NCBI GenBank assembly: GCA_002269645.1
Contig: NIVC01001690.1
Span: forward strand, 72,537-136,536
DNA: 64,000 bases
Direction: 5' to 3'
Source: Macrostomum lignano
Lineage: Eukaryota
Below the pieces are notes generated by a model, which was not told the DNA's origin, did not search any database, and saw nothing but the letters and a program-made list of their open reading frames with translations. This document shows, in pieces, positions 34,885-39,482 of the stretch; the first letter of the stretch is position 1; every line of letters starts with the position of its first letter. The position numbers and the translations under genes were made by a program.

Positions 34885-37800
34885 TTAACGTCGGCTCAAT
34901 TCAAGTATTTTTCTGGTTAACTGAAGAAATTTTCCCGAAGTTTGATAACTGCTCAGTCGGAGCAGTCGGTCTCGGATCAGCCTGAGCTGCGCCACTTCCC
35001 TGCTGTACAGGGAGAATGTGAACAGCTCTTCGAAGTCGCATCCGGGATCCGAGCGAAGATCCGCGAACCAATCATCAAGGAAGTCCTGTCGAGCTTCGTC
35101 AAGCTCGAGTTGCAGCGAGTTGACTAACAGAGAAAAGTTGAGAAAGAACCGCTTGTCGTAGTAGGTCATGCGGGCTGGGAACTGGGCCCGGAGCTGCGGG
35201 CTGGGCAGCCAAGCCAAGCTGATTGGCTGCTCGAATCGCATTGAGAACTGCCAGGCTGAGTCTCGACTGCGGGGATGGATAGATAGATAGATAGATAGAT
35301 AGATAGATAGATAGATAGATAGATAGATAGATAGATAGATAGATAGATAGATAGATAGATAGATAGCTAGATAGATAGATAGATAGATAGATAGATAGAT
35401 AGATAGATAGATAGATAGATAGATAGATAGATAGATAGATAGATAGATAGATAGATAGATAGATAGATAGATAGATAGATAGATAGATAGATAGATAGAT
35501 AGATAGATAGATAGATAGATAGATAGATAGATAGATAGATAGATAGATAGATAGCAGCAACTGTTCCCCACCTGCCCAGGTATTCCAAAACGTCGCAGTC
35601 CAGCTCGCACGGAATCTGCCTAGCAACTCTGCACGGCCGATTTCCAAAGCCTTCACGCAGCAGTCTCTTCGCTTCGAGTTTCTGCCTGTCCTTCAGCGCG
35701 ACGAGCACCTTCAAAGCCGTTCGAGCGGTGCACGCGGCGTCAGGCAGCCGGTCGATGAGCAACCGAACGCACTGCGAATCGTCCACCTGAGCGAGGCTGA
35801 GCATCGCCAGCTTCACGGCCAGGTAGATGTGATGAAACTCCAGCGTGCCTGGCAGGCAGGGAGTCTCCAGAAAGTACAGCGGCATCAGGCGGAACGGGTG
35901 CAGATGAAACGGTGCCGCCTCGCTGATTGGCACCAGCTGCTGTTGAAATTCGATTAGTCGATGTCGCAAGTCCTTCAGAGTCTGGCTCACCGCATCGGCA
36001 GCAGACGAGCTGTCGCAGTTCTTGCGCAGATAAACCAGGGCGTTGGGCACGAAAAAGTGCGGCAGCAGGCCTGTACTGGAGCTGAGGTGGTCAATGAGAG
36101 ATCGTAGGCACTGCTGCACCAACTGCTCAAGATTGTCCGGCACCCATTGGTACTCAGGTATGAGTTGAATCGTCCGAAATAACAGAGTCTTAGCGTGATA
36201 GGATTTGAGGCCTCGATAGTGACGACCAATAACGCGTTTAATGAGATACTTGAGCAGCAGGAACACCTGGCCCTGCACCGTGCTCAACGATCGCATCGCG
36301 GAGTTCTCTAGAAACGTGGTGCTCACCCGGAGCTGCTTGGACTCCTTGCCCGGACTTGAAGCCCTGATGAGGTGGCAGGACCAGGACCGACTCATCTCGG
36401 CGGTGACGGATGACAGCACTCGTTCGGGCAGGTGGCCGGGACTGGCCAGGAACTCGGGCACCGGGTAGCGGCAGCAGGGATTAGCGAATGCGATGTCCAT
36501 GTCGGGCCTGACCTGGGTGCCGCGCTCTGCCGTGGCGGGGTGCGACTCTGAAATTGCAGCGTATGCAGCCTGAATTGAGGCGCCGGTTATCCATCATGCT
36601 ATGCTGCGCTTATCCATAGGCTTCGCTTACCCTGAAACTCCGCTTATCCAGAAGCTCTACTTATCCAGAAGCTCTACTTATCCATAAGCTCTGCATATCC
36701 ACAAGCTCTGCTTATCCAGAAGCTCTACTTATCCACAAGCTCTGCTTATCCACAAGCTCTACTTATCCACAAGCTCTACTTATCCACAAGCTCTACTTAT
36801 CCATGAGCTCTACTTATCCATGAGCTCTGCATATCCACAAGCTCTACTTATCCACAAGCTCTACTTATCCACAAGCTCTACTTATCCACAAGCTCTACTT
36901 ATCCACAAGCTCTACATATCCACAAGCTCTACTTATCCACAAGCTCTACATATCCGCAAGCTCTACTTATCCACAAGCTCTACTTATCCATGAGCTCTAC
37001 TTATCCATGAGCTCTGCATATCCACAAGCTCTACTTATCCACAAGCTCTACATATCCACAAGCTCTACTTATCCACAAGCTCTACTTATCCACAAGCTCT
37101 ACATATCCACAAGCTCTACTTATCACAAGCTCTACTTATCCACAAGCTCTACTTATCCACAAGCTCTACTTATCCACAAGCTCTACTTATCCACAAGCTC
37201 TACTTATCCACAAGCTCTACTTATCCACAAGCTCTGCATATCCACAAGCTCTGCTTATCCAGAACCTCCGCTTATCCAGAAGTTCGCTTACCCAGAAGTT
37301 CCGCTTACCCAGAAGCTCTGCTTATCCGGAAGCTCCTGTTGAGACTTTATTCTTCATTTCTTCAGTTCATTTGCACTTTTCTCTGTTCATTCTTTTTTCT
37401 TTCTCTGTCCAGTTCAGTCCTGTTATTCTTATCTCTCTCCCTTGCTACCTTTTAATTGACTCTTCAGTTTTGTCTCTCTCCTTGGTTGATCCAATGACCA
37501 CTAGAACTTCTAGTGGTCCTTGGGTTGATCGCGCACGCCACACCCTTTTCTTATCTTCACTCAACCAGTTAGTTAATGACTCATACGATGTCCCCGTTTT
37601 GGCCCTTTAGAGCTGCTGTTCATTTTAACTCAAATTTTGATAGTTAAACTTACTATTTTCTCTACATTGTGGGGGCCAAGCCGGGATCAAGCCATGTCAA
37701 GTGCAAATTTTGCAACATGCATTTATAGTCTGGTGGATTGAACCGACCGCTCTCCCTCTACTGCAAACCTGTTGCCATGGAGAAAAAAACCAGATGCCCG

Positions 37801-39482
37801 GGCGTCACCCTCGACCACAGGTTGAGCTGGACCCTACACGTCCTAACCAAAGCCCGCAAAGCTCTCGCGACGCTCGCGCAGATCCGCAGAGCTTTCGGCG
37901 CTACCTGGGGCCTCACCCTCTGGCGCCTCTAGTGGAGTTACACTGTCATTGTTAGACCGGCCATCTCCTTTACCGGCTTCATCTCCCTCTTGACCCTCTC
38001 GGACGGAAATCCGCTCAAATTCAAAACCAGCATTCCACCACGTCATGAAGCAAGGGTCAACTGGAAACCCCATCAAATCCACTGCTTCACTGACGGGTCC
38101 CAAATCAAGTCCGCCTCTGGCTACGGCTACTGCATCGTGTCTGGAGGGAGAACCGTGGCGACCTTCTCCCTGCACACCGGCACCTGCTCCACCGTTTTCC
38201 AGAACGAAGTTCTCGTCATCAGCTCCTGCGCCATGGAGCTGTACAATCAGCACGTCTGGGGGAACGAGATTACGATACCCTCCACTCGGACAGTCAAGCG
38301 CCGATCCACCACACACCACCACCTGCTCGCGTACTGTCCTCGACTGCATCGGACAGCTCAACCGCTTAGGTGCCTCCAACAAGGTGTCCCTAAGGTGGAT
38401 CCCTGAGCATTCGGGCCACCCCGGCAACAAATTGGCCTATCGCCTGGCCAAGGCTGGCTCGACCAGTTTTTGCTGGCCCCACTTCCACCGCCGTTGTCAC
38501 CACTCAGATCAACCAGTGGGTGGCTTCAAAGCACTGGGAGAGGTGGGCTAACGCCCCGACTGCCGGCAATCCCGCGCGGTTGTCGCCTGTCCTTTCCTCG
38601 CCCTCCACACGGCCTTGCTTGGACTCCACCTCGCATTGACATCAGGGCGGTGACCATGGCATGGCATGGCTATTTTGCCAGGCATCGTCACCTCCAGAGA
38701 AAAGTCCATAGTAAGGAATGCCTTTTACCTCTCCGGTGTCGAGAATGCGGAGCACTTCATCTGTGAATGCCCCACCTTACTCAGGACGGGCTCACCTACC
38801 TCGGCCCAAACCCGGTCCTCTCCAACTTTTTCAAGCTCTAGAATCTCTGCCAGCTCGTCCGCTAACTAAGGGCTGACCGCACCATCGGATCTCCCTGCGC
38901 GACACCGCAGCACCAGCTGCCTATGGTAGTCAGGGGTTGGCGGAATGGGCGGCGGCGCCTCGTCGCTGTATATGGATTCCCGGAACCTCCTGTAGCTGAG
39001 TCAAGTAATTCACATTTAAGAAATGACTAAGAAAATCGCGACAGCTCCGCCTATCCGCAAGCCTTTTTTATGTTAAGTCCCTTGTGAAATTCTCACAGTG
39101 ACAAACCGCACCTGCACTCACCGCTGTACTCAGCCAGCTCAACGTGACCGTTTACGAGACGGCTCGTCGACGCGACATCCTGGCAGTCGCACACCCCACC
39201 GCCGATGTGGTAGCGACTCCCGCTAAGGCAGGTGACATCGATATCCGAGTCGGCTCCGATGGTGCCGTCCAGCCGTTCAAAGCAGGCCCCCCAGCCCTCC
39301 GCGAAGCTGCCAACAATTCGCAGATTTGTCTGCTGCAGGTAGGACCGGCTGACTGCTTCGAGTGCTCTGGCCAGGGCGGACTGCTTGGCAGCCCGGCTAG
39401 CGGTGAACCCGGCTAAGCGCATGCTGTGGCAGAGTTGCTTGCTGAACTCAGCTGATGACAGATTCAGCCTGAGAGATTGCAT
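34885..39482 (-). CDS. cGAS-like receptor / Mab-21-family nucleotidyltransferase (cGLR), 3 exons, ~572 aa
   Basis: Exons 39122-39482, 35572-36547, 34885-35266 join in frame with no frameshift. NTase signature IVGSFAEG...DSDID, third acidic residue in PDMDIA, Mab-21 motifs [28 protein letters not shown]. Confidence 0.9.
35277..35553 (+). repeat. (GATA)n microsatellite
   Basis: Makes up nearly all of cGLR intron 2. Confidence 0.95.
36640..37330 (+). repeat. 17-bp minisatellite (CTTATCCACAAGCTCTA)
   Basis: Period 17 measured; cGLR intron 1. Confidence 0.95.
37690..38900 (+). mobile_element. Degenerate RNase H-containing LINE (R1/LOA-like) 3' fragment
   Basis: Broken frames: [16 protein letters not shown] (post-RT), CFTDGS..TVFQNE and [16 protein letters not shown] (RNase H), EHFICECP (C-terminal Cys/His motif); antisense in cGLR intron 1. 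Confidence 0.8.

Follow-up and report, generated by a model that had tools for sequence, protein, structure and literature searches.

The DNA analysed here is a 64-kb stretch of contig NIVC01001690.1 of the flatworm Macrostomum lignano (the window, in whose numbering positions are given), and its main subject is a minus-strand gene for a predicted cGAS-like receptor (cGLR) that carries ankyrin repeats. This gene has five exons between 34885 and 41426, and its spliced coding sequence yields, residue for residue, the 903-amino-acid protein PAA65033.1 (P0001) of locus BOX15_Mlig000846g3. Candidate GT/AG pairs were tested in combination, and a single model, with GT..AG borders at all four introns, gives the exact deposited translation. 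An earlier note on this DNA had described an intact cGLR at 34885-39482. We found the gene to be larger, as the ATG at 39482, which is in frame and lies shortly before the acceptor of exon 3, is not the gene start and two more exons lie beyond it; the product is not a bare cGLR of about 570 residues but an ankyrin-repeat fusion of which some 335 N-terminal residues had been overlooked. The statement that the gene is intact and free of frameshifts holds for the spliced product, which is open throughout, but not for the interval as written, which consists of three exons in two frames, separated by two introns. The 572-amino-acid product of these three 3' pieces, whose phases agree, is identical (100%) to the C-terminal 569 residues of PAA65033.1. 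The parts of the gene are as follows, all on the minus strand.

40727..41426, minus: exon 1, with the start codon (41426) and ankyrin repeats, amino acids 1-234 (tblastn of PAA65033.1 at 100% identity, exact splice model, Pfam Ank and Ank_2 at E 1e-44 to 1e-47)
40073-40726, minus: intron 1 (GT donor, AG acceptor)
39766..40072, minus: exon 2, with the final ankyrin repeats and a linker, amino acids 234-336 (tblastn, exact splice model)
39122..39468, minus: exon 3, with the N-terminal spine helices, strand 1 (GS), strand 2 (DxD) and a CxC motif, amino acids 337-451 (splice model; helices 5-18 and 23-44 and strands 49-52 and 75-81 of the structure model, in domain numbering)
39294..39311, minus: GSFAEG, residues 389-394, containing the GS of the nucleotidyltransferase motif (translation, paralogue conservation)
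39237..39251, minus: DSDID, residues 409-413, with the predicted catalytic pair D411/D413 (domain D75/D77; paralogue conservation, model strand 75-81)
36548..39121, minus: intron 3, 2574 bp, GTGAGT...TTTCAG (splice model), containing a minisatellite and an antisense retroelement fragment
35572..36547, minus: exon 4, with the third Asp, the nucleotide-pocket motifs, the Mab-21_C helical lobe and the start of the C-terminal extension, amino acids 452-776 (splice model, Pfam Mab-21_C)
36492..36503, minus: DMDI, residues 467-470, with the predicted third catalytic Asp D469 (domain D133; paralogue conservation, model strand 131-140)
36186..36332, minus: LRVSTTFLE ... KSYHAKT, residues 524-572, counterparts of cGAS WRLSFSHxE and SYHVKT (hhalign and hmmsearch against mouse cGAS)
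35892-35909, minus: FHLHPF (translation)
34888..35891, minus: family-specific C-terminal extension, residues 671-903, 233 amino acids, with intron 4 inside the interval (paralogue alignment, structure model)
35267..35571, minus: intron 4, 305 bp (splice model), nearly all of it a (GATA)70 microsatellite
34885..35266, minus: exon 5, with the remainder of the C-terminal extension and the TAA stop (34887-34885), amino acids 777-903 (tblastn, splice model)

The last base of exon 3 (39122) is followed by a GTGAGT donor, and a three-frame translation places GSFAEG and DSDID in the open stretch of this exon. Exon 4 has its first base at 36547, behind a TTTCAG acceptor, and ends at a GTGGGG donor (35572), with DMDI, the Mab-21 motifs, and FHLHPF inside it; the acceptor of exon 5 is CCCCGCAG (35266), and the final 127 codons are read in a different frame from exon 4. 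All four short motifs that had been picked out in the earlier note (GSFAEG, DSDID, DMDI, and FHLHPF) are present on the minus strand at the positions mapped above. Because the spliced coding sequence equals the deposited protein and the motifs are kept across 39-42 paralogues, this pattern is not due to chance. PAA65033.1 is built of three modules, namely about eight ankyrin repeats (amino acids 1-336), a cGAS/Mab21-type nucleotidyltransferase (337-670), and a clade-specific, mostly helical domain of 233 amino acids.

The first of these modules is recognized by Pfam Ank in seven stretches (E 1e-44) and by Ank_2 (E 1.3e-47), and a G-x-[ST]-x-L-W-x-A motif recurs every 33 residues from amino acid 47, which is the spacing of tandem 33-residue ankyrin repeats. 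In the second module, the C-lobe is directly recognized by Pfam Mab-21_C (E 7.7e-10, 39.3 bits against a cut-off of 24.1). Searched against PDB sequences, a profile of three paralogues matches mouse cGAS (E 1.8e-6) and a chain of cGAS-like receptor 1 (E 0.002) and no MAB21L1 chain at E<=1, so that the protein does not group with the developmental MAB21L proteins; inactivity together with such a grouping is what the earlier note had named as fatal to its reading. An hhalign comparison with mouse cGAS, for which the construct was taken from Table S3 of Li et al. (PMC9980059), gave a probability of 94% and paired TWRLSFSHTE with the corresponding family segment and CSYHVKT with KSYHAKT. The zinc-thumb segment of cGAS falls in a 12-residue gap of the family in this alignment, and the pattern H(X5)CC(X6)C finds no match in the protein, which bears out the reported lack of a vertebrate-type zinc ribbon.

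We modeled residues 337-903 with AlphaFold2 from an alignment of 42 paralogues, and the resulting model has a mean predicted local distance difference test score (pLDDT) of 93.2, a predicted template modeling score (pTM) of 0.92, and no segment below 50; a run with a three-sequence alignment (pLDDT 40.6) was discarded. The top 50 PDB matches of this model in Foldseek are all cGAS, the oyster receptor Cv-cGLR1 (8gjw), or MAB21L1, at probability 1.00, E of about 5e-7, a target template modeling score of about 0.5, and about 14% identity, over 339-390 aligned columns, which suffice to span both lobes. At the level of the predicted overall fold, the structure check that had been proposed for this protein is favorable. 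In the model, GS lies at the end of strand 49-52, D75 and D77 at the start of strand 75-81, and D133 within strand 131-140 (domain numbering). These are the strand positions at which the nucleotidyltransferase fold expects GS, DxD, and the third Asp. A Foldseek search of viral structures returned nothing at E<=0.001, and scans with PADLOC and NCBIfam at E<0.01 gave generic ankyrin matches only, with no pointer to a bacterial CD-NTase or effector. Charge offers no clear argument for nucleic-acid binding, because the isoelectric point of the domain ranges from 5.6 to 8.9 across the clade (8.5 for the Mab21 core of PAA65033.1).

For Li et al. (2023, PMC9980059), a cGLR is recognized by its motif, by homology over two lobes, and by its predicted structure, and the motif has the form h[QT]GS, X8-20, [DE]h[DE]h, X50-90, h[DE]h. 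Predicted structural homology to known cGLR/CD-NTase enzymes, in their sense (PMC9980059), is present here, and PAA65033.1 also shows the active-site spacing, with G389-S390, 20 residues, D411-I-D413-V, 53 residues, and M-D469-I. These residues are conserved across the clade (counted over non-gap members of the 42-sequence alignment): G53 and S54, which are G389 and S390 of the whole protein, are each kept in 38/39 paralogues, and the acidic residues D75 (D411), D77 (D413), and D133 (D469) in 38/39, 37/39, and 36/39, respectively. The counterparts of cGAS pocket residues are likewise retained (R189 in 41/42, S191 in 40/42, Y232 in 40/42, and K235 in 42/42).

The gene is under purifying selection. 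Over the 572 codons shared with a nearby copy, g1, we counted 18.5 synonymous and 19.5 nonsynonymous changes, which corresponds to a ratio of nonsynonymous to synonymous rates (dN/dS) of 0.33 (binomial p 0.002 against neutrality).

A set of Cys and His residues in the N-lobe is also conserved in the clade: C93 in 34/39, C95 in 40/40, H108 in 37/41, C141 in 38/39, C173 in 32/40, and H174 in 37/40. They fall in CDC (39183-39191) and CCRYP (36462-36476) and at H444 and C509-H510 of PAA65033.1. Judging by this pattern, the set could be a metal site in place of the missing cGAS zinc thumb.

The third module had been described as about 200 residues following FHLHPF that could not be assigned. It is 233 residues long and indeed has no Pfam or PDB relative: searches of both with a 10-sequence extension profile and with single members found none, the best PDB match being at E 0.38 and TPR matches being single and weak. 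Thus, we found no support in these profile searches for the extension being a degenerate TPR-like domain or a second Mab21 domain. The extension aligns among paralogues, which share invariant residues in it (D, W, F, NF, and D..E). The model, mostly at pLDDT above 90 here, gives it nine helices plus some short strands that form, judging by the pTM, one globule with the core. Its hidden Markov model has no match in relatives outside Macrostomum, bivalve relatives included. It is a genuine clade-specific domain.

PAA65033.1 belongs to a large, M. lignano-specific expansion of ankyrin-fused cGLRs. When 1.84 billion cluster representatives were searched exhaustively with HMMER, 791 proteins matched at E<=0.001, and 83 clusters (at 50% identity) did so at E<=1e-30. 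The family is visible only by this exhaustive search; word-filtered searches with the single protein or with the three-sequence profile found three M. lignano proteins only. The strong matches that carry a species name are all from M. lignano (13 of the 14 looked up; P0087 carries none), while the named weaker matches come from the bivalves Mercenaria and Argopecten, one of them annotated as 'cyclic GMP-AMP synthase-like receptor', and from the annelid Lamellibrachia, and the bivalve and annelid relatives align at profile positions ~116-330 only. Members have diverged widely, with the other clusters 28-38% identical to PAA65033.1. Among 42 members scanned, Mab-21_C was found in 37 and ankyrin repeats in 25, and the length of the ankyrin array varies widely among paralogues. 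The gene model of P0004 consists of two tandem Mab21 units.

Several very long paralogue models appear chimeric. In two homeologous M. lignano models, P0055 and P0167, the Mab21-plus-extension unit is joined both to further ankyrin repeats and to a caspase domain (Peptidase_C14, E 2.7e-25); these may be either true sensor-protease fusions or adjacent genes merged by annotation.

At the near end of this expansion are three almost identical gene copies, g1, g3 (PAA65033.1), and g4. The copy g1 (PAA65026.1) lies on the same contig about 70 kb away, in inverted orientation and with the same two downstream neighbors (27067-45553 of NIVC01001690.1 against 34000-42500 of the window). It is annotated from the ATG equivalent to 39482, as a 572-amino-acid protein without ankyrin repeats, because its first ankyrin exon is spread over three frames; the matches of this exon in three different frames suggest that exon 1 of g1 has frameshifts or sequence errors. 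The g4 protein (P0151) is, like PAA65033.1, 903 residues long, and 6 of the 8 substitutions between the two fall in the 336-residue ankyrin part, against 2 in the remaining 567 (Fisher p 0.058), a skew that hints that the ankyrin repeats may evolve faster than the rest. One of the two g4 core substitutions changes the conserved His510 to Gln.

Ankyrin- and TPR-fused cGLRs were named as minor architectures by Li et al. (2023, PMC9980059). The cGLRs of this lineage have thus been looked at before: the available parts of their supplementary tables include ankyrin-fused M. lignano cGLRs, with Ank_2 matches in M. lignano accessions in Table S2 and, in Table S3, five proteins of the species (samples 89-93) that were cloned, minus their ankyrin repeats, to be included in a screen of 140 enzymes (PMC9980059). 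In the same parts of the tables M. lignano does not occur in Table S5, and PAA65033.1 was not found among the accessions listed (PMC9980059). The closest known counterparts are the ankyrin-fused M. lignano cGLRs of that study (e.g. PAA45980.1, PAA86972.1, and PAA68676.1), which share with PAA65033.1 the species, an architecture in which a Mab21 core is combined with ankyrin repeats and a long C-terminal part, and the motifs GSFxEGWG, SDIDh, LRVSTxFLE, and KxYHAK; over the stretch compared by eye, PAA45980.1 equals family member P0035 except at one residue. The architecture of PAA65033.1, that of an ankyrin-fused M. lignano cGLR, was already catalogued in 2023 (PMC9980059). Outside these supplementary tables the ankyrin-fused cGLRs of M. 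lignano have so far gone unreported, as the literature searched held no main-text discussion of Macrostomum cGLRs and no published ligand, product, or phenotype for any clade member.

Comparison with better-known relatives places the protein further. It shares with mouse cGAS (PDB 4k9b) the bilobal Mab21 nucleotidyltransferase fold, the logic of GS and acidic triad, and counterparts of the WRLSFS and SYHVK pocket segments, and differs from it in its low identity (about 14%), the missing zinc thumb, the 233 extra C-terminal residues, the Cys/His set of the N-lobe, and an N-terminus made of ankyrin repeats, the N-terminus of cGAS lying outside the comparison. Outside the clade, the exhaustive HMMER search places bivalve cGLRs nearest (E of about 1e-10 to 1e-14 over the core), and Crassostrea virginica Cv-cGLR1 (PDB 8gjw) ranks second in Foldseek; they too form a lineage-specific expansion (PMC9980059), but the C-terminal extension of M. 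lignano is undetectable in them. Human MAB21L1 (PDB 5eom) shares the fold with PAA65033.1, but it is a non-immune developmental protein (PMC9980059) that the family profile leaves unmatched, whereas PAA65033.1 comes from a large, divergent, ankyrin-fused expansion.

Judging by the conserved residues of its active site, PAA65033.1 is probably an ankyrin-fused cGLR that acts as a nucleotide-messenger sensor. Such a protein would be a cytosolic sensor in which the ankyrin array, the C-terminal domain, or both may capture a ligand or partner, or else keep the enzyme inactive by autoinhibition. On activation, the Mab21 core would join nucleoside triphosphates into a cyclic or linear nucleotide second messenger, and a downstream receptor, STING or another, would take up the product. 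A bolder proposal, which we regard as doubtful, is that the ankyrin array and the 233-residue domain together make up a new module, for sensing or for regulation, attached to a cGLR core and that the expansion signals without STING, for example straight to cell death; the latter output is hinted at by the paralogue models in which ankyrin repeats and a caspase domain accompany the Mab21-plus-extension unit.

Several observations weigh against the sensor reading. The Pfam Mab-21 core model has no match in the protein, a phmmer search of the 572-residue model against PDB sequences returned nothing relevant, and the N-lobe went undetected by hhalign as well; the homology of the N-lobe therefore rests on predicted structure and motif spacing. 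MAB21L1 shares this fold, is not known to act as an enzyme, and equals cGAS in Foldseek score. The residue before GS is Val388 in place of the Q or T of the h[QT]GS motif, and across the clade this position holds V in 22 members, F in 8, and T in 4, besides other residues. In the available part of Table S3, the Note column that labels active enzymes (e.g. '01, Pd-cGLR'; 15 active overall) is empty for all five M. lignano samples (PMC9980059). Finally, loss of both cGAS and STING has been reported in Schistosoma and Schmidtea, so the receptor may be missing. The main rival explanation draws on some of these observations and holds that PAA65033.1 is a pseudoenzyme or scaffold whose Mab21 fold binds a nucleotide or partner and makes no messenger, the ankyrin and C-terminal domains signaling through protein-protein contacts. 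That CTP-bound MAB21L1 is among the best structural matches fits this idea, as do the replacement of Q/T by Val, the absence of all five screened paralogues from the enzymes listed as active, and the reported absence of STING from other flatworms. However, the acidic triad and pocket residues are retained at about 95% in a fast-diverging clade, which is hard to explain without catalysis, and absence from the active list counts for little because the constructs screened were truncated and were given a single ligand pool (PMC9980059). Moreover, Li et al. (PMC9980059) accepted and cloned paralogues with M, L, or F before GS, as far as their tables were available, and the position was therefore not treated as excluding in practice. 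We regard a non-catalytic scaffold as a real possibility, though not the likelier one.

Alternatively, the protein may be an active nucleotidyltransferase with a chemistry other than that of a STING-feeding cyclic-dinucleotide synthase, making linear oligonucleotides like OAS or nucleotidylating a protein or RNA that its ankyrin or C-terminal domain holds in place. The large C-terminal domain, which packs with the core in one confident model and has no counterpart in known cGLRs, would be compatible with such a role, as would the unusual residue before GS and the finding that some cGLR products match no known standard (Li et al. 2023, PMC9980059). Nothing speaks positively in its favor, however, and all of the closest relatives of known function, by sequence and by structure, are cyclic-dinucleotide synthases, so this seems quite unlikely. 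It is more improbable still that the gene is a decaying duplicate, a nonfunctional redundant copy in a highly duplicated genome. The existence of three near-identical copies, the gain by intron 3 of 2.3 kb of repeat and retroelement sequence, and the disrupted first ankyrin exon of g1 would suit decay, but the 903-codon frame is intact with canonical splice sites, the insertion is intronic, and dN/dS is 0.33; on the intact spliced frame and this ratio we reject a pseudogene. MAB21L1/2 proteins are conserved and are not known to carry added domains. We regard it as extremely unlikely that PAA65033.1 is an orthologue of these developmental proteins, with which it has a common fold; it is a 903-residue protein with an ankyrin array and an extension, from a lineage-specific expansion of 83 clusters, and we reject a developmental MAB21L identity because its family profile matches cGAS and cGLR and no MAB21L1 at E<=1.

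Flatworms are widely described as having lost cGAS and STING; one exception is M. lignano, whose ankyrin-fused cGLRs form a large and divergent expansion. If the bolder proposal of a new module and STING-free signaling were true, both the input and the output of this cGLR pathway would be new, and this in a phylum to which the loss of cGAS-STING is usually ascribed. M. lignano is a laboratory model in which RNA interference and transgenesis work. Given this tractability, the clade may be well suited for asking what ankyrin repeats add, what the C-terminal domain does, and whether cGLR signaling can run without STING. The single gene of the window adds little to this beyond a clean, intact, and well-modeled example.

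The introns of the gene differ from those of its sister copy. Intron 3 is 259 bp long in g1, and therefore about 2.3 kb has been inserted in the PAA65033.1 gene. Within it lie a 17/51-bp minisatellite (36608-37335) and an antisense, plus-strand retroelement fragment (~37700-38900) with a weak RNase_H match (E 5e-4 on 38045-38551, plus strand); its reverse-transcriptase-like tail, read by eye, points weakly to a truncated non-LTR (long terminal repeat) retroelement. Intron 4 is 509 bp in g1 against 305 bp here, and its (GATA)70 microsatellite (35274-35554) mimics, on the gene strand, a long 'SIYL' frame that joins the flanking exons in lists of open reading frames (ORFs).

Elsewhere in the window, two adjoining ORFs carry recognizable domains.

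50463-51536, minus: intact ORF of 357 amino acids with mariner/Tc1-type transposase domains (Transposase_1, DDE_3, HTH)
49190-50122, minus: Methyltransf_22 ORF, adjoining the mariner/Tc1-type ORF

A perfect palindrome occupies 52645-53897, with two 619-nt arms that are 100% complementary and 15 nt apart, each encoding an identical 160-amino-acid ORF with a GIY-YIG domain; it may be either a head-to-head pair of mobile elements or an assembly artefact. On the plus strand, an ORF at 9795-10316 has a below-threshold match to rhodopsin-family seven-transmembrane receptors (7tm_1, E 1.9e-4), and an ORF at 7805-8440 with no Pfam match may, as a guess, belong to the same gene as an upstream exon; the two are separated by a long microsatellite (~9070-9589). 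Long micro- and minisatellites are unusually abundant in the window (2600-5100, 9070-9590, 11130-12180, 18280-19430, 29860-31480, and 55820-56700) and give rise, in several frames of both strands, to spurious ORFs 150-350 codons long.

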